The notes under the pieces: model-generated
Seen by the model: the letters and a program-made list of their open reading frames with translations, nothing else
Databases searched by the model: none
Told to the model about the DNA's origin: nothing
Shown: positions 1 through 9,700 of the stretch, piece by piece
Layout of the letters: each line of letters opens with the position of its first letter
Numbering within the stretch: the first letter of the stretch is position 1
Position numbers and translations under genes: made by a program
Assembly (NCBI GenBank): GCA_002104945.1
Contig: MCFH01000045.1
Span: 390,261-454,260 of the forward strand
Length of the DNA: 64,000 bases
From: Piromyces finnis finn
Lineage: Eukaryota > Fungi > Neocallimastigomycota
Direction: 5' to 3'

Positions 1-2268
1 AGTATTACCAGAAGAATTATTATCTGTAGCATTATTAGAATCATTACTTGATGGAACTAATGCTTTGTAAAATTCAATTGGAATACCATCCGGACCTGAT
101 GCTTTATAATTTGGAGTAGTGAGGATAGCTGACTTGACTTCATCAATACTAATATCTTGGTTGATATCCCACTCATCAAGCATAGGAAGTGAAAAACGTT
201 TATTCGTTGGTTCTTCATACCAATGCTCCAAATCAAGACTTACACCACTTGGGTCTGATGCAAGATTTTCGAAATGATCATGCCACACTTCTAGTTGTTC
301 TTCCGTAGCAACAACTAATTCTCCATTTTTATTTTTAATTGGTTGAGCAATAAAGAAAGAATCTTTTCCAATTTTTGCAGTTTTCTTGATCCATTTCCAG
401 GCCTTCTTAGGATTATGACTCTTCATATACTCACATCCTGTTTTAATCCAATGAAGATATTCTTGCTTCCTAAATTCATTACATCTTTTGTGGATGTAAT
501 CAATGAGTTTACGGTAGATTTTAATTCTTTTAATAAATTCATCTATATCATAAATTCTTTCTTTTTTAAATCTCTTATACAACTTCATTTTGATTTTTTG
601 AAGATTAAAAATTTGTTGTGAAATATGAAATGAAGACTTTATAACATTATTTGCTGAAGTAATACTGAGCTCGTCTGCAATTGAAAAAGCAGTTGAAGTA
701 AACTCTTTGGAAAGTTCATCTGTAGAAACATTAGGATCGTTGAATTTTGCTGAAAGTATTTGGAATTTATTATGACTGAGAATAGATTCCTTTTCCTCAA
801 TACATTTTAATCTATTCCATTTCAGAATTTTCTTAGGAACATTAAAGTCATTAGAAAAATCTTCCATAGGAATAATTTTACCATTAATAAGAAGTGGCTT
901 ATGGTCTGATACAGGATAAAAATTATTTATAAATGATCCTGAGTGAATAAGATCTTTCATCTTCGAATTGATAAGAGCATGGTCAATGTCGGAAGATTGA
1001 TCACCTCGAGTCCAAGAGATAGTAGACCCTCTAAGCGGAAGAATTTCCCAATCTCCTAATCCATTAGTTGATAACCAGTTGGATAATTTTACTTTAGACA
1101 TATTAAAATCACCAACAAGAATCGATGGATGGGATGAATGAGTTTGTAACCACAAGCGAACTTCTAACTTTGCATGATCAACATAGATGTTGTGATGACT
1201 ATGAGGCATATAAACATTACCAATCGAGCATTTGAATCTATTCCAGAGACTAAAAGTATAAATAGAAATAATATACTTTCCAGAGAAGTTTTCAAGTGAG
1301 GCTTGACATGAATTGTGAAAACCTAAATATAAACCTCTCATTCCCGGAACTGATTCGTCAGCTTTCTTGAAAAAGTGTCTATAGTTTCGCAAAGTAACAC
1401 GACAAGGATAATCTGTATTCGATCCAGAACCATTACCAGTTTCTTGGAAACATAAAAATAATGGTTTGAAAATAGCTGTGAAATAGCTAATACTATCTCT
1501 CTTTTCGTGATTCCACCCATTGGTGTTCCAACTAAGACAAAAAGAAAAGCTATCAGGCTTGTTGGATGAGGAAGAATCGTTGCTATTATTATTATTATTA
1601 AAGTCATCGTTATTAATGGATGATGCATCAGAGGAATAAGTAGAACTATTACTAGATGGCTGTGAAACTGAAGAACTATCAACTATTGAACTGTTATCAG
1701 AGTTGATAGAGCTATTAGAATTAATTGTTGAATGTTGAGATTGAAATTGTGTTTGCTGTAGATCTGGAATATTTTCATGATGGGAAACTTGTTGAAGATC
1801 CTGTTGAAGATCTTGTTGAAGATCGGATTGTTGATGAGATTGTTGAACTGATTGTTGAACTGATTGTTGAAATGATTGTTGAATAGAATGTTGATGTTTA
1901 TTAGAAACTAAAATTTTACGTTTGAGAGTGGAAAAAGTGTATTTGTGATTCCTTCTACTACGAGCTGAAAAGGAAATTGAGGTAACTGAAAGTTTCTTCT
2001 TTAACATGTGTAAGATTTTAATACAATCTTTTGATGAACCATGAACCTTGACTAAGAAAAAGTGATCATTGAAAGTTTGAAAATATTTAACACTAATAAC
2101 TGAATTAAATTTATCTTCTAGAATAACCTCGAGTTTTTCCCATAGCATATTTACTGACCATGATCGAATACCACGGATAAAGAAGGAGCGAATATCATCT
2201 AAGGGGATACCATAAGACCGGGTACCACGTCTGATATAATTCTTGTCTTTAATATAAAGGACTGACAT
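1..2268 (-). mobile_element. Non-LTR retrotransposon (LINE), single long ORF: RRM-like N-terminus, Q/S/N-rich linker, AP-endonuclease, start of RT region; runs off the window at position 1
   Basis: Hand translation gives 756 uninterrupted codons from ATG 2268 to position 1. APE motifs occur in order: SWNTNG, LCFQET, GNVYMP, LVGDFN, SDIDH, SDHKP. The pre-RT motif KASGPDGIPIEFYK follows. It is not in the ORF track, probably because there is no stop inside the window. Confidence 0.92.
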
Positions 2269-2864
2269 GATAATAAATTCTAATTAAAAATATTGAATAT
2301 AAAATAAATACTAATAAAAATTATAAATATAACGTATATGGAAAAAAAATCTGTCTCTCTCTCTTCTTAAAAGTACTGGATAGTACAAAAATTGTTACGA
2401 TGCTTTGTTTAAAGTTTCTTTTTTTTGAATTCTAGTTGTAAATTTTCTTTAAAAATTCTAGTTTTGGTTTGTTGTTAGTAAATTCGAATCGCTTTTTGAC
2501 ACTAAACTTGTTTGACTTTACTTTTCATTAAATATTTAAATTGGTAAAAAATTTGAATCAAGAATGTCGACACCAGAAAGCTTGTGAATAGTATTTTTAC
2601 ATGATGTAGAGTGAATCAGTCTCTTACAAGAAACAATACAACAATAGCTACATGAATATAAAAATACAATGCAAATGCTAAAGTTGACTACATTGGATTC
2701 TTACAAGAGAAGAGTAGTACTACATGAATACATGAATAAAAGAAAAAATACAGCAACAAAATGTATTACTCTTCTAATTAAATACTATACAAACTTACCT
2801 GAATATCAAACATTCAACTTATTCATCAAATACTTAAATTCGATGGATAAATGTTTTTTAATCG

Positions 2865-3506
2865 CTCAGTACCATGAGCTTAGTCCTAATAATTTTCCCT
2901 TAAAGACTAACCAAGCATCCATTGCGCAATGCTTGGATTTAATTCTTCCTACTCTCTCAGTACCATGAGCATGAGTAGACCCCCTTGAGAAACTACATTT
3001 ATTAAATAAATGAAGGCACGTTTCCAAGAGGGCACCAAGCATCCATTGCGCAATACTTGGATTTAATTCTTTCTACTCTCTCAGTACCATGAGCATGAGT
3101 AGACCCCCTTGAGAAACTACATTTATTAAATAAATGAAGGCACGTTCCCAAGAGGGAAGCTTAGTCCTAATAATTTTCCCTTAAAGACTAACCAAGCATC
3201 CATTGCGCAATGCTTGGATTTAATTCTTTCTACTCTCTCAGTACCATGAGCATGAGTAGACCCCCTTGAGAAATTACATTTATTAAATAAATGAAGGCAC
3301 ATTCCTAAGAGGGCACCAAGCATCCATTGCGCAATACTTGGATTTAATTCTTTCTACTCTCTCAGTACCATGAGCATGAGTAGACCCCCTTGAGAAACTA
3401 CATTTATTAAATAAATGAAGGCACGTTCCCAAGAGGGAATGAGCATGAGTAGACCCCCTTGAGAAACTACATTTATTAAATAAATGAAGGCACGTTCCCA
3501 AGAGGG
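2865..3506. repeat. Modular tandem array of hairpin units (basic period 124 bp, higher-order period 281 bp)
   Basis: Modules: A (TTAGTC..GACTAA) at 2880 and 3161; B (CCAAGCAT..AT[G/A]CTTGG) at 2911, 3035, 3192, 3316; C (TCTACTC..GAGTAGA); D (CCCCCTTGAGAA..TTCCCAAGAGGG) x5, ending at 3506. Confidence 0.95.
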
Positions 3507-4190
3507 ATCATTAACTAAATTACTATCTAAATTAGATTATTATTGTTAAGGCCAATAACAAAATGCACAATGTAAAAATGATAAAACTTAACGGACTCCT
3601 TTCTTTATATCTATAGATTTTATGAATTAATCTCTTACTTTGATAATGCAAATTTCACTTATTTACAAAATCTAAAATAACATAAATTATCAAAATATAA
3701 TAACACACGAAATACAGTCATTTCAACTATTATATATGCTTAAAAGTATTACTTTCAAAAATTAATGATAAGGACAAATAATTTTAATTATTTTATATTA
3801 AATTAGTTTTATTTTATTTTTTGCCTTATTTTTGTTTAGTATAAATAGTATTATTATTAGTTTATAATTAATTTTTCAATATTGCTTTTATTTTATTACG
3901 TATTTATTTTCTTTTTATTATTTGATTAATTTATTTATTTATTTATTTACTTTTTATATTTGCATTAAATTTTTTTTACTAGTTTATATAAAAAAAATCT
4001 TTTTAAAAATTTTACTTTTAAATATAAAAACAAAATCTTTTACTATTTTATAAATAATTTTGGGAGGGATGGTTTATAAATATGCAAATTTTTAATTCAA
4101 CGTAAGAATTTAAAAAATTGGTCACTGATTTTTTTAAAAACCTATTTTGACTTAAAAATTTTAGTTTAATAAATTACTTTTAAAGGCAAT

Positions 4191-6730
4191 TTACATCTTT
4201 TCGTGGAAGGTACGGGCAATAACTTCCTTTTGTTGAGCTGGAGTTAACTTAACGAAGTTAACAGCGTAACCAGAAACACGGATGGTAAGGTTTGGATAGT
4301 TTTCTGGGTGAGCCATAGCATCTTCAAGAGTTTCACGCTTGAGGACGTTGACGTTAATGTGGTGAGCACCCTTGGTGAAGTAACCATCTAATAAACCGGA
4401 AAGGTTACCTTGACGTTCTTGTAAAGTCTTACCAATGGTGTTTGGAACAATAGAGAAGGTGTTAGAGATACCATCCATACAAGAGTCGTAGTTAACCTTA
4501 GCGACAGAAGAAAGAGAAGCAACAGCACCAGAGAATTCACGACCGTGCATTGGGTTACAACCTGGAGCGAAAGCTTGACCAGCCTTACGACCATCTGGAG
4601 TAGAACCGGTCTTCTTACCGTAAACGACGTTAGAGGTAATGGTAAGAACGGAAAGAGTGTGCTTGGCACCACGGTAAGTTGGGGTCTTTCTGAGCTTGTT
4701 GATAAGCTTGTCAGTAACAGTTCTGGCGAAGAAATCAACACGGTCATCATCGTTACCGAATTTTGGGAATTCACCTTCAATCTTGAAGTCAACAGTTAAA
4801 CCGGTCTTAGCATCACGGATTGGAGTGACCTTAGCGTACTTAATAGCAGAGAAGGAATCAGCAACAACAGAGAGACCAGCAACACCGAAGGCCATAAGAC
4901 GACGGACATCGGTATCGTGAAGAGCCATTTGAAGGGCTTCGTAACAGTATTGGTCGTGACAGAAGTGGATAACGTTCATGGTGTTGACGTAGAGCTTGGC
5001 AATCCAGTCCATAGCCTTGTCGTAGGTTTCCCACATCCAGTCGAATGGAATTGGACCTTCTGGAACTGGACCGAAGTCTGGACCGACTTGCTTACCGGTT
5101 CTTTCATCCTTACCATGGTTGAGGACGTAGAGCATAAGCTTGGCAAGGTTACAACGAGCACCGAAGAATTGCATATCCTTACCGAGTCTCATGGCAGAAA
5201 CACAGCAGGCAATACCGTAGTCATCACCGAATCTAGCGGACATAAGAGCATCAGATTCGTATTGAATGGAAGAGGTATCAATAGAAACCTTAGTGGCGAA
5301 GTCCTTGAAGTTCTTTGGAAGAGCCTTGTTCCAGAGGACAGTAATGTTTGGTTCTGGAGCTGGACCTAAGTTGTAGAGAGTGTTAAGAACACGGTAAGAG
5401 GTCTTAGTAACTAAGGTACGACCATCGCTACCCATACCACCAAGAGACATAGTAACCCAGGTTGGATCACCAGCGAATAAATCGTTGTATTTTGGAGTAC
5501 GTAAGTGACGAGCGAAACGTAACTTAAGGATAAGGTTATCAATGATTTCTTGAGCTTCAGCTTCAGTGATAACACCGTTCTTTAAATCGTTTTCGAAGAA
5601 ACAATCAAGGAAGGCATCAACACGACCAAGAGACATAGCAGCACCATCTTGTTCCTTGATAGAACCTAAGTAACCGAAGTAAACGAATTGAGTAGCTTCT
5701 CTAGCGTTCTTAGCTGGCTTAGAGATATCAATACCGTAGGACTTGGCCATTTGAGTAAGTTGCTTAAGAGCCTTGATTTGGTCAGCAACTTCACCAATCT
5801 TCTTCATGGTTGGTTCGTCCATTAAACCCTTTTGGAGTTCAACTCTGTCCTTTTCCTTTTGGGCAATAAGACGGTCAGTACCGTAAAGAGCAACACGACG
5901 GTAATCACCAATGATACGACCACGACCGTAACCATCTGGTAAACCAGTCATAATAGCGTTGGAACGACCAGTTCTCATTTCCTTGGAGTAAAGATCGAAG
6001 ACAGCGGTGTTGTGGGTCTTACGGTAGTCAGAGAAAATGTGTTCAACTTCCTTGTCCATTGGAACGTTAACAGCGGCAAGAGCGTTCTTGACCATGTTAA
6101 CACCACCGAATGGCTTGATAGCTCTCTTAAGTGGAACATCAGTTTGGTAACCGTAGATAACTTCGTTATCTTTGTCAAGGTAACCTGGCTTGTGAGAGGT
6201 AATGGTAGATGGAGTGTGTGGATCAACATCGTATAAACCACCGTTGGCACGTTCCTTGGCTAAGTATTCTTCAGCCTTGGCGAAAAGCTTCTTGGTCTTT
6301 TCAGTTGGACCAACAAGGAAAGAATCATCACCTTCGTATGGGGTGTAGTGCTTCTTAATCCAACCTTCGACATCGATTTCACTCTTGGCAGCAGCATCGT
6401 TAGTGATGACTGGAGCTTGAGTAGCGTAGGTCTTAGCTTGCATAGCTGGGACCTTCTTGGCAGACTTAAGAGTAGTCTTCTATTATATAAATTTTTTTAT
6501 TTATAATTTATATTAGTAATCTATACAATAATTTTATTTTTATCTTTTTTATTAAAATATTCTTGTATTTAATATTTTATTAAAATGTCATTAATATTTA
6601 CCATAGCTGGGGTGTGAAGAGCACGGGTTGGCTTGGCCATTCTGACACCAGCGACCTTGGTGGCAGCAACAGCATTAATAGAAACAGTGTTAGCAAGAAC
6701 ACTGACGTTGGATAAAGCTAAGCTTTCCAT
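4191..6730 (-). CDS. PFL: Pyruvate formate-lyase (formate C-acetyltransferase), ~805 aa, with N-terminal hydrogenosomal-type targeting extension; 2 exons (6730-6602, 6479-4191)
   Basis: Active-site IACCVSAM and C-terminal glycyl-radical RVSGY are present. GT-AG intron 6601-6480 joins [11 protein letters not shown]...HTPAM to [16 protein letters not shown] in frame. Codon bias is strong. Confidence 0.97.
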
Positions 6731-9700
6731 TTTATTTGTTTTAAATATATAAATTATTTAGTTTGACAAATTGTGAAGAAAAAAATTAAAGTGATTTTTA
6801 GCTCTATTTAAATGAATCTCGGTTAAATTAAATTTTATTTAAACGAAAATCAAAAAATATAAATCATATAAATAAAATATATTACAATATATTATTATAT
6901 ATTACAATATTAATTAATGTGAATATTTTTGTAATATATTATATGTAGTATGTATCTACCCTAACAAATTATATAATTAATCTTAATATATTACATAATA
7001 TATTATTTTTTTAATTTTTCCATTATTTCAATTCTTTCAAAATTAATATATTAGGATGAAATTTCGATATTGAAAATATCATAAAACTATTATATTATTA
7101 ATATATTAATTTATAATAGTAATTATATATTATCATTTTTAAAAATTTTCAATTTCTTAATTTTTTTATTATAAATGCATTCATATAACTATAATATCAT
7201 AATATATTATTATTAAAAAGTAATATAATAATATTACTATATAATATATTATTAAATATATTGTAATTAATTATTTTATATTTTATAATATAAATTCAAT
7301 AAATAGTATTAAAAATAATAATCTTCTAATTCTTTCTATTAATTATTTAAAACTATTAAAATATAAAAGTATTAATGAATTCAGTAGATAGTCTAAAATA
7401 TCATTCATATAAACATAATAGTATTCATAACAAATATTTAATATACATGTATTTATTATTAAAAAAAACTGTTTATTTGTAAATAGCACTCTTTTAAAAT
7501 AATAAAATAAGCAAAAAAAAAAAGTATACATAAGTTATATAATATATTTAATAAACTATATGTTAAACAACAAAAATATTCGAAAATATTATAGTATTTA
7601 CTTCTTATAGTATGTACTAAAATAAATAAAGAAAAATTATGACATAATAAATACATTATATACGAAGTATTTATTATTACTAAATAAGAAAAAATTACGT
7701 GTAAAAAAAAAAAAGATTTTTTATATTTTAAAAATAAAACTCCCCATAAATCCAATTAATAAGGATTTTTCATCATTAATTTAAGAAATACAATGTAACA
7801 TATTTCAGTAGAAATTTATTATAAATTATAGATTTTGTATAAAAATAATTTTGGTTTCTCTTAATATTATTTTTCTTAAATGAGAATGTGAAGAAAGATA
7901 GCTATTGAAATTAAAAAAAAAAAATTAATAAAACTTTTTCGTAATAACATACAAAATATATAATTTAAAAAGTAATTATATTTAAAAAATACACGATATT
8001 CATTATGTAGTTAAACTTATATTTAAATCTAAATATAGGAACAATCAAAAAAAATTTTAAAATTATTTTAAAGATGCCAATAAATACATAAATTCGAAAT
8101 AACTTTTATCTTTTTTTATATAAATGATAATCCTTTAGTTCCATTATTTCCATTAAAAATAATAGAAATTATAGTTATTAAATATTTTTTGTATTATCGA
8201 TTTTACCTTAAAAAAAAAAAAAAAAAAAAAAAAAGCATTTAAATAAATAATAAAACAGGTAAAGCTAATATTATAGTTTAAATTCTAATAATTTAAAAAA
8301 TTATAATAAAAGATTTGCAGCATTATTTTCGCATATTATAGAAAAAATTGAAAATACTTTAAAAGCAATAATATAAATTTTGATGAAGTTTTTATTAATA
8401 TGAATAAATAAAAAAATCTTAAATATTAATATATGTATGGTATAATAGCATTTAAAAAATAGTGAACATTCAATGTTTTTGTTATTGTTATAATTAAAAA
8501 AGTAATAATTCTTTAAATGGTTATATAACTTTACATTTATTTCTTTGCTATTCTATTACAAATTAAAGTTTGCATTTAATAAAAATTTTATTACTATTTA
8601 AAAAACTGCTTTATTCATTTATCGAGGATTTTTATTGAAAAACCAATTTATTACTTTTATTTTTCTCTATAATGTAATTTATTAGTTTTTATATTCTTTT
8701 TAAAAAATCTACACATATTAAAAATTTTAAATTGAAATTTTAACTATAATATATTATTTAATTTAAAATACTACCTTTATCATCATTTTTAATTATATCA
8801 CAATTTGGATAAATTAAATTTATTCTCCAATAAAAAATCAACTAATAATAATACTTAAAATAAGAAAGAAATTGACATACCAACAAATCCACAAATTTAT
8901 AAAAAAATAGGTAATAAAATATTAATAAAATATAATCTAAGGAAATACAAAAATGAAAAATACCAATATTTAATGATTGTTATAAATATTTTAAAATAAA
9001 TTATATACATATACTATTAATAATTTTTATAACTTAATAAAAATTATTTTAGAAATTTAGGAATAAATTACGATTAAGTTATTCTAACCTTTGATAATAA
9101 TGAATTAATTTATATAATAAATAACTTAATTTAAAGTAATATAAAGTATGTTTGTCAATAATAAAAAAGCATTAGATAAATATTGATTTTATTAAAGCTA
9201 CTTTAATCTTCCTACTTGGAATATTTTATCTTAGTATATTTTGAATTTTTTTTATATATAAAAAAGGTAATAAAGATTAATCGTCTTAAATAGTATAACT
9301 ACTAAAAATTCTTTATTATCATTTTTAATACAATTTCTTTACATCATAATATAAATGGTTGATTTATTATATATTTATAAAATTTTATATTCATTAAAAA
9401 AATAATAAATATTTTAATATAAATATATATTTCTTAATATTTTAATAATAAATAATGTATAAAAAATATGCAAAATGTATTTTTCTTTAAATCTTACTTA
9501 AGTATCATTATTATTAACAAAAAAAAACTAAACAACAATTTAGTAATTACCGTTTTTTAAACCTATCCCTTTTTATTTTTATAATAAGAAATCCTTTTTC
9601 ATTATTCACAATTATTCTATAATAAATATTTTTTCATTGTAATTTTAATTTCTTTATACTTCTTTTTTATTAAATGCATATAATTTACATATTTGAATAT

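Follow-up and report, generated by a model that had tools for sequence, protein, structure and literature searches.

In mouse and rat L1 elements, tandem monomers (A, Tf and Gf) occupy the 5' untranslated region (UTR) ahead of a non-repeated leader, differ in number between copies and are the presumed seat of the internal promoter. The 5'-most monomer of mouse L1 is the truncated one. That mouse L1 promoters are built from monomers is described in one report (10.1101/2022.08.06.500894). Here, a comparable arrangement is described in the fungus Piromyces finnis, where an array of hairpins at positions 2865-3507 of the analysed window forms the 5' leader sequence of a long interspersed nuclear element (LINE) on the minus strand. 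The window is the whole stretch of 64,000 nucleotides (nt) under study, positions 390,261 to 454,260 of contig MCFH01000045.1 (C173:390261-454260) in a 56.46-Mb assembly of 232 contigs.

Several other systems resemble parts of this arrangement. R2, a non-LTR (non-long-terminal-repeat) element that has just one open reading frame (ORF), has a 5' RNA element that is reportedly bound by the R2 protein, in work attributed to Christensen, Ye and Eickbush in 2006. This folded 5' RNA, conserved more in structure than in sequence, can serve as a model of a cis-acting 5' signal that is recognised by the protein the element itself encodes (see also PMC4117753, PMC11194090). In trypanosomatids, the first bases of the LINE L1Tc carry a short, conserved, structured module found across the clade, Pr77/L1TcRz, in which one sequence acts both as DNA, that is as a promoter, and as RNA (PMC3383444, PMC3185411). 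The Zepp elements of Chlorella and Coccomyxa insert into members of their own family in the same orientation, producing nested or head-to-tail clusters (PMC3446292). In addition, template jumping by non-LTR reverse transcriptases (RTs) leaves extra sense element sequence at 5' junctions, sometimes serially (PMC8857657, PMC2718515).

The P. finnis locus resembles mouse L1 in that tandem units on the sense strand stand at the extreme 5' end of a LINE and vary in number. The unit is 124 nt here against about 200 nt there, the blocks here start at element base 1 and end variably, and each unit here is a conserved three-hairpin RNA module that is single-copy in relatives. None of the features that define the L1Tc module or the R2 5' RNA was found: compared with L1Tc there is no fold like that of hepatitis delta virus (HDV), no Rfam match, no sequence similarity and an unrelated host, and the inherited internal junctions argue against efficient self-cleavage, while R2 has a restriction-like endonuclease and a specific site in ribosomal DNA, in contrast to the APE-type, L1-like and dispersed element described here. 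Zepp forms one cluster per chromosome, whereas the copies here are dispersed over many contigs, with insertion points that cluster near resident 5' ends and with no single landing sequence among four target-site duplications (TSDs). Template jumping is read here from the pattern of the sequence, and at least some of the junctions are nestings with TSDs. No paper describing such 5' heads was found in the literature on LINEs of anaerobic fungi. The head is a 5' RNA module, conserved in structure and uncatalogued, that belongs to an L1-like fungal LINE.

Stacked 5' heads of a young L1-like LINE

The array consists of the stacked 5'-terminal heads of a young and very abundant L1-like LINE with a single ORF and a poly(A) tail. 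Searching the genome with a single 281-nt unit produced 383 candidates, of which 52 matches were scored, with identities of 97-100%. In 30 of 30 fetched loci, homology to the window ended exactly at the right edge of the array and ran at least 1.7 kb leftwards, and the same leader and ORF followed the array in all 30, which had been retrieved by the array alone. The minus-strand ORF beginning at window position 2268 contains Exo_endo_phos and RVT_1 domains with a weak zf-RVT match. The common homology edge and these domains bear out the initial annotation, made from the letters of the sequence, which had placed the array at the 5' end of a minus-strand LINE and had proposed that its modules be sought at LINE 5' ends genome-wide. 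In intact copies, the ORF encodes about 1511 residues, with an N-terminal domain followed by APE and RT domains; that of the window copy, hereafter copy 1, is frameshifted near residue 979. The RT is closest to human L1 ORF2p (E 9e-33, versus 6e-18 for R2). The N-terminal protein sequence has at least 150 matches in the genome, mostly 97-100% identical and many with open frames of about 1512 residues. The TSD of full-length copies begins at the array edge and ends after the poly(A), as in L065, where it reads TAAGTCACCACCA.

Tandem Repeats Finder and repeat searches resolved the array into a 281-nt unit present twice at 98% identity (2877-3157 and 3158-3438), a 124-nt sub-unit within it and a terminal unit of 69 nt (3439-3507). 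On the sense (minus) strand, the basic 124-nt unit has the order D-C-B, in which hairpin D takes 54 nt, hairpin C 32 nt, a linker 11 nt and hairpin B 26 nt. The usual leader of the family, D-C-B'-D-C-B-A, is 281 nt long and comprises two heads plus the short hairpin A; it is followed by a partial C-like stretch, about 600 nt of non-repeated leader and then the ATG. The canonical leader measures 889 nt in total, and 19 upstream ATGs were counted in it. The module order first proposed for the plus strand, c-A-B-C-D-B'-C-D-A-B-C-D-B'-C-D-c'-D, agrees with the array sequence and the repeat searches. The junctions had also been placed at or near hairpin boundaries, but the c' junction sits within hairpin C. 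Counted by exact or near-exact matches, the genome holds at least 345 A|c junctions, which represent leader-bearing copies, against 572 D starts, and the canonical internal junction B'|G|D occurs 238 times exactly. Extra blocks are present in about a quarter of 29 loci chosen by protein, and the number of units varies among copies.

Other parts of the element also show conservation. The first approximately 100 residues of the ORF (residues 1-240 lie, for example, at L065:5598-6317:-) precede a low-complexity stretch rich in Q, S and N; they are conserved across relatives in the protein alignment and have no Pfam match. Possibly these residues form an RNA-binding domain of the ORF1 type that is joined to the single ORF. 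Within the non-repeated leader, a block at about 2592-2748 (-) is 68-81% conserved among LINE lineages whose proteins are 43-54% identical, with counterparts at L066:1357-1513, L072:415-549, L073:3079-3142 and L070:733-777 and with the shared motifs repeated TTCATGTAG, TGTAAGA and GATTCACTC, in that order. A sequence resembling a consensus 5' splice site, CAG|GTAAGT, lies in the leader at window position 2798 (-), about 530 nt upstream of the ATG, and L068 has ACAG|GTAAGT. The non-repeated leader resembles the head only marginally, scoring 31 where shuffles reached up to 32, and the idea that it consists of decayed heads was therefore dropped.

Nesting and probable re-copying of heads

The initial annotation had treated the repeats as a single tandem array, but the 281-nt units derive from separate LINE copies, which represent different subfamilies and sit one inside the other. 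A region of 16 kb around the array was mapped by blastn onto a full-length reference copy of the LINE. Read in the sense direction, the outer part of the map comprises LINE nt 5038-5075, nt 1-68 and nt 1-280; the inner part is a complete copy, nt 1-5699 with poly(A), followed by nt 241-409; and the far end holds another copy, nt 1-3069 joined to nt 5093-5126, and then an older divergent LINE. The complete copy is thus flanked on either side by the 40 nt of LINE positions 241-280 (window 3158-3197, identical to L032:3460-3499), from which it follows that the unit at 3158-3438 is the leader of a resident element. The right copy of this duplication comes immediately after the poly(A) of the nested element, and the resident leader then resumes collinearly. 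Full-length copy 1 is inserted in the leader of a resident copy, R, at the A/c boundary and with a 40-bp TSD; the same orientation, the TSD and the resumption of the resident after the poly(A) are all present at the window locus. Moreover, the second D hairpins of the two units carry different haplotypes, AGTACC (28 units in the sample) versus GACGCC (7 units), and the A|T|D junction was found genome-wide at the window locus alone, both of which fit the nesting of two LINE copies.

The features of the locus, all on the minus strand, are arranged accordingly. The leader of copy R (3158-3438, 281 nt) consists of D-C-B' at 3315-3438, D-C-B at 3192-3314 and A at 3158-3191; its second D has the haplotype AGTACC, and its last 40 nt (3158-3197) are the left TSD copy. 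The leader of the nested copy 1 (2877-3157, also 281 nt) consists of D-C-B' at 3034-3157, D-C-B at 2911-3033 and A at 2877-2910, with the haplotype GACGCC in the second D. The non-repeated part of this leader, 2269-2876, begins with the partial C-like stretch c (2865-2876), and the ORF starts with an ATG at 2268-2266 and runs through 1-2268 past the window start. Outermost is the 69-nt block at 3439-3507 (LINE nt 1-68), in which hairpin D is joined by 15 nt from the start of C and a single T. A sense-oriented ORF patch of 37 nt at 3508-3543, matched by blastn to nt 5038-5075 of the full-length reference copy, abuts this outermost head fragment. The junction of the 69-nt block (C position 15, T and D) is present at three loci genome-wide. 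The block may have been inherited, may come from a further resident or may have been re-copied, and the patch may stem from nesting or from re-copying by the RT; to that extent both tell against nesting as the full account of the array.

Nesting is not confined to the window. Locus L063 contains a nested copy with a 10-bp TSD. At L059/L040, one of the three loci that share the junction of the 69-nt block, the first 15 nt of hairpin C stand just before base 1 of the inner element, and C restarts after a poly(A). From its position and length, this poly(A) is taken to be the tail of the inner element itself, which would make the locus a nesting with a 15-bp TSD. The nick sites of the four TSDs compared share no common motif, and the junctions cluster in hairpin C (c12, c15 and c19). 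The metagenomic relative L070 has likewise landed in a LINE ORF (L070:1-47), and its upstream flank encodes the SDHKP motif of the APE domain. Judged from this flank, self-nesting may be a trait of the whole LINE clade. The second LINE copy downstream at the window locus (L032:243-2441 (-), within C173:378261-394260) is internally deleted, nt 3069 being joined to nt 5093 across a TCCGG microhomology, and it ends at nt 5126, where it abuts the older divergent LINE, the RT of which is 68% identical to that of the young family. The end of this second copy fits neither simple nesting nor simple re-copying.

Across the family, every block starts at element base 1 (CCCTCTTGG, with 0-2 extra bases), and the blocks end variably, at about nt 5, 12, 32, 66, 69, 120, 126, 131, 133 and 280, yielding at least eight junction types, in each of which the 5' start is fixed and the 3' end varies. 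A piece of 24-218 nt from the LINE ORF or 3' UTR abuts the 5' end in 18 of 54 loci (L001-L062, with 400-1400 nt scanned upstream). All of these patches are in the sense orientation, none being antisense or longer; they often lie just after the poly(A) of another copy and sometimes occur two in series (L006, L023). They look like the products of serial template jumps, or of a landing bias near the 5' junctions of earlier insertions. Nesting at random should leave long flanks, collinear with the element and in either orientation; these short sense patches fit re-copying by the RT. Longer or different stacks also occur, namely a higher-order repeat of about 259 nt (67+68+124), a pair of 69-nt blocks in succession and, at two loci, blocks of 32 nt (G000:C1:904291-905058; C18:37129-37415; C1:2521228-2521284; C57:547350-547406).

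Heads may thus be stacked by two routes. In one, a copy would nest in the leader of a resident, after which transcription from the resident start site would make the extra heads heritable; in the other, the RT would run off the 5' end of its RNA template and re-copy the head of a LINE RNA. Stacking by self-nesting does occur, and the sequence patterns suggest that re-copying by the RT probably contributes as well. It is unlikely, though deserving of some weight, that the RT produced all extra blocks by jumping from the template 5' end to an internal site of another LINE RNA, with no nesting at all. Non-LTR RTs are known to jump templates (PMC8857657, PMC2718515), and the fixed start and variable end of every block are as such jumping would leave them, as are the short sense-only ORF and 3' UTR patches, some of them serial. 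However, a 40-bp TSD borders the 281-nt repeat and the resident leader continues beyond the nested poly(A), the piece behind that poly(A) starts at nt 241 and not at nt 1, a start that would not be expected from a run-off jump, and L063 (10-bp TSD) and L059/L040 (inferred 15-nt repeat) also look like true nestings. The earlier suggestion of a template-switching product is therefore compatible with the short sense patches and head fragments, but not with the main duplication, which is a nested insertion with a 40-bp TSD.

A conserved fold on the sense strand

From comparison with distant relatives, the fold of the head looks like an old, selected structure of the LINE sense-strand RNA. A protein search returned relatives at 73-30% identity, and a metagenome scan with protein alignment gave eight related contigs, six of which reach a 5' end (L066, L068, L069, L070, L072 and L073; 43-54% protein identity); together with P. 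finnis, these make up the seven lineages compared. All six relatives begin, within a few bases of the apparent 5' end, with a D-like hairpin that has a C-rich 5' arm and a G-rich 3' arm, followed by a two-tiered C-like hairpin whose 6-nt loop contains GUAC or AUAC as its core. A B-like hairpin carrying an invariant 8-nt loop, GCGCAAUG, is also present in four of the six. Each relative has one head, tandem heads being absent from the six 5' ends. The hairpins D and C, with B where it occurs, fold in 7/7 lineages (z -2.9 to -7.3 against mononucleotide shuffles), the sense strand is the more stable in six of the seven, and G-U pairs summed over the seven number 25 on the sense strand versus 10 on the antisense strand.

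The stems of these hairpins are respelled between lineages. The outer stem of C is written TCTACTC/GAGTAGA, ATCATCT/AGATGAT, GAAGCTT/AAGCTTC or AACTTTACT/AGTAAAGTT, its inner stem CTCA/TGAG, CTCG/CGAG, AGCTG/CAGCT, GTTG/CAAC or ATTCCT/AGGAAT, and the B stem CCAAGCATT/GATGCTTGG versus AACATTAT/ATAATGTT; the D stem is likewise respelled in the per-lineage folds. In the gapless alignment of B, 7 of 9 pairs have changed on both sides, 90.7% of cells are paired compared with 30-52% when the partner is slid, the covariation score was reached by 0 of 500 shuffles, and the loop-closing pair alternates between U.G and U-A. Both the structured leader on the LINE-sense strand that had been proposed and the covariation that should accompany it are thus found among the relatives. 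Only this B alignment was used for pair counting. Because MAFFT alignments of the heads and of the C inner hairpin misplace stems, the C and D helices were counted by script from per-lineage folds. A covariance model built from P. finnis and L070 recovered the 5' ends of L068 (E 6e-4) and L072 (E 3e-3); it handles the C hairpin of these two poorly, and its alignment, rich in chance hits, was left out of the pair counts. At the level of primary sequence, the motif CCCYxxAGGGAxCGTA is common to the lineages at +1 to +20. In P. finnis and L070, the sequence ATTGCGCAAT forms a perfect palindrome; L068, L072 and L073 have lost it and keep the 8-nt loop GCGCAATG with a new stem. The L068-type B hairpin was not found in the P. 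finnis genome.

Folding of the window sequence is consistent with this comparison. One 124-nt unit on the sense strand is predicted to form three hairpins at -43.5 kcal/mol (z = -4.8, with 0 of 200 shuffles as good). Hairpin D (for example 3385-3437, minus strand) combines an outer stem of 12 bp, two of them G-U pairs, with an inner stem of 6-7 bp, and starts at element base 1 or 2; hairpin C (3353-3384, minus strand) has an outer stem of 7 bp and an inner one of 4 bp, closed by the 6-nt loop UGGUAC; and hairpin B' (3316-3341, minus strand) has a 9-bp stem and the same 8-nt loop GCGCAAUG as the relatives. On the sense versus the antisense strand, z is -4.0 versus -3.0 for D and -2.9 versus +0.1 for B', and G-U pairs per unit number 5 versus 1. 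It had been stated that every module is a stem-loop and that G-U pairs favour the minus strand; hairpins are indeed predicted for D, C, B' and, weakly, A, and the bias is as claimed. The paired C-G to T-A change noted earlier in D is likewise real and affects D positions 14/41, which in 102 units read C-G in 54, U.G in 7, U-A in 28 and C.A in 2. The change is compensatory and passes through the sense-strand U.G wobble (7 copies versus 2 with C.A). Pairing between these positions requires that the register be shifted by one and a C bulged out, and the two D variants that had been flagged for extra G-T pairs on the plus strand both pair normally in the shifted register. All major D haplotypes still fold, at -14.5 to -20.3 kcal/mol.

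Some of the results count against a selected sense-strand fold, or limit it. Hairpin C is slightly more stable on the antisense strand (z -3.3, versus -2.1 on the sense strand), and L069 is the lineage in which the antisense strand as a whole is the more stable. Hairpin A folds weakly (z -1.5), and no counterpart of it was seen at the 5' ends of relatives; hairpin B is missing in L066 and L069. For the whole 281 nt, z is equal on both strands (-6.1), so this measure says nothing on strand, and the strand signal is visible only in the z values of single modules and in the G-U counts. Within the family, substitution density is similar in stems and loops when position 1 is excluded, as is expected for young copies that are mostly dead. 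Furthermore, the seven lineages offer about three stem types as the basis of the covariation, and hence few independent events. With these points weighed, we regard it as likely that the LINE head, the nesting in the window and the conserved sense-strand fold hold jointly.

Possible roles of the head and its setting

The conservation of pairing bears directly on what the head is for. If the units were DNA-level promoter monomers as in mouse L1, with palindromes binding dimeric transcription factors and the RNA hairpins incidental, then the position of the array at the 5' end of a LINE that requires an internal promoter, the differing number of units between copies and the motif CCCYxxAGGGAxCGTA conserved at +1 to +20 would all be accounted for, as would the palindrome ATTGCGCAAT, which is perfect in P. 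finnis and L070 and resembles a bZIP/C-EBP-type site; the monomer-built promoters of mouse L1 cited above provide the precedent. We nevertheless hold this account to be distinctly unlikely, since a promoter role alone does not explain stems that are respelled and covary: pairing is kept in three separate hairpins, L068, L072 and L073 lose the palindrome yet keep the loop and gain a new stem, and the G-U pairs are concentrated on the sense strand. What is very likely, given the need for an internal promoter and the motif shared in the first approximately 20 nt, is that a promoter function overlaps the head.

A ribozyme that cleaves itself so as to release the LINE RNA precisely from its first base, in the manner of the HDV-like ribozymes of R2 and L1Tc (Pr77/L1TcRz), would suit a structured module placed exactly at the 5' end with all blocks starting at one base. 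L1Tc, with its dual promoter and ribozyme in the first 77 nt, is a precedent (PMC3383444, PMC3185411), and an internal segment of D is complementary to the C loop in 7/7 lineages, making a pseudoknot possible. Such a ribozyme is very improbable here. As the initial annotation had stated, no known ribozyme core is recognised: the covariance models of Rfam 15 gave no match at E <= 1 over window 1-9000, and over 2560-3520 at E <= 10 they gave only chance-level microRNA and long non-coding RNA matches at E 3-8 and no ribozyme. The three hairpins stand side by side and form no nested double pseudoknot. Efficient 5' self-cleavage by the head is also unlikely because internal unit starts appear to have been inherited through RNA in hundreds of dispersed copies, among them the 238 exact B'|D junctions and rarer ones such as c12 (5 loci) and c15 (3 loci); the self-processing module envisaged in the initial annotation is thus disfavoured. 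As for a satellite or the terminus of a non-autonomous miniature inverted-repeat transposable element (MITE) that merely lies beside the LINE, the array is tandem, palindrome-rich and GC-richer than its flanks, but the same leader and ORF follow it in 30/30 loci and the TSDs of full-length copies start at its edge and end after the poly(A), leaving this origin a probability close to negligible.

The stacked LINE heads may instead act in cis. The LINE RNA would need the head, for example as a structure through which the protein of the element recognises it or marks its 5' end, and the head as DNA would also have to carry or overlap the internal promoter; this proposal of a cis-acting 5' signal with promoter overlap is offered as tentative, the chances being somewhat against it. 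A tertiary contact within the head is a lead and not a result. The segment after the D 5' arm can pair with 5-6 nt of the C apical loop in 7/7 lineages, with a pairing sum of 37 compared with 23.8 +/- 2.2 for shuffled loops, but non-cognate combinations score nearly as high because both partners share a GUA/UAC core. Both conserved loops also hold self-complementary tetramers, GCGC in B and GUAC in C, which could permit loop-loop pairing between two RNAs. In a more elaborate version, kissing between the D internal loop and the C loop would compact the head, the GCGC and GUAC cores would pair two LINE RNAs in a manner akin to a retroviral dimer-initiation site, and the element's own protein would read the head and mark the template 5' end. 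The same affinity would direct new copies, or re-copying by the RT, to the heads of other copies and would explain why heads are landed in and re-copied. This version is a long shot; if true, it would make visible the birth of LINE 5' monomer arrays.

The setting of the array is extremely AT-rich, with 12-25% GC outside genes. A tRNA-targeted element like the Dictyostelium TRE, guessed at from this AT-richness, was rejected because a tRNA scan of the window was empty. Near the array, at window 4191-6443 (-), lies an intact, intronless pyruvate formate-lyase ORF of 750 residues whose GC content of 42% is well above that of its surroundings, which fits an anaerobic, hydrogenosome-bearing fungus.

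In summary, a LINE has to restore its own start signal every time it jumps, and 5'-end signals are little known outside L1, R2 and L1Tc. The uncatalogued module described here sits in an early-diverging fungal lineage and provides a compact RNA for the study of protein binding, promoter activity and translation control. For genome annotation, such arrays are LINE leaders, neither satellites nor novel genes. The family is so young that the intermediates of monomer stacking, namely nestings with TSDs, short re-copied fragments and inherited junctions, remain readable, and its single-head relatives contrast clearly with this multi-head family. Taken together, these features make the origin of LINE 5' monomer arrays directly testable.

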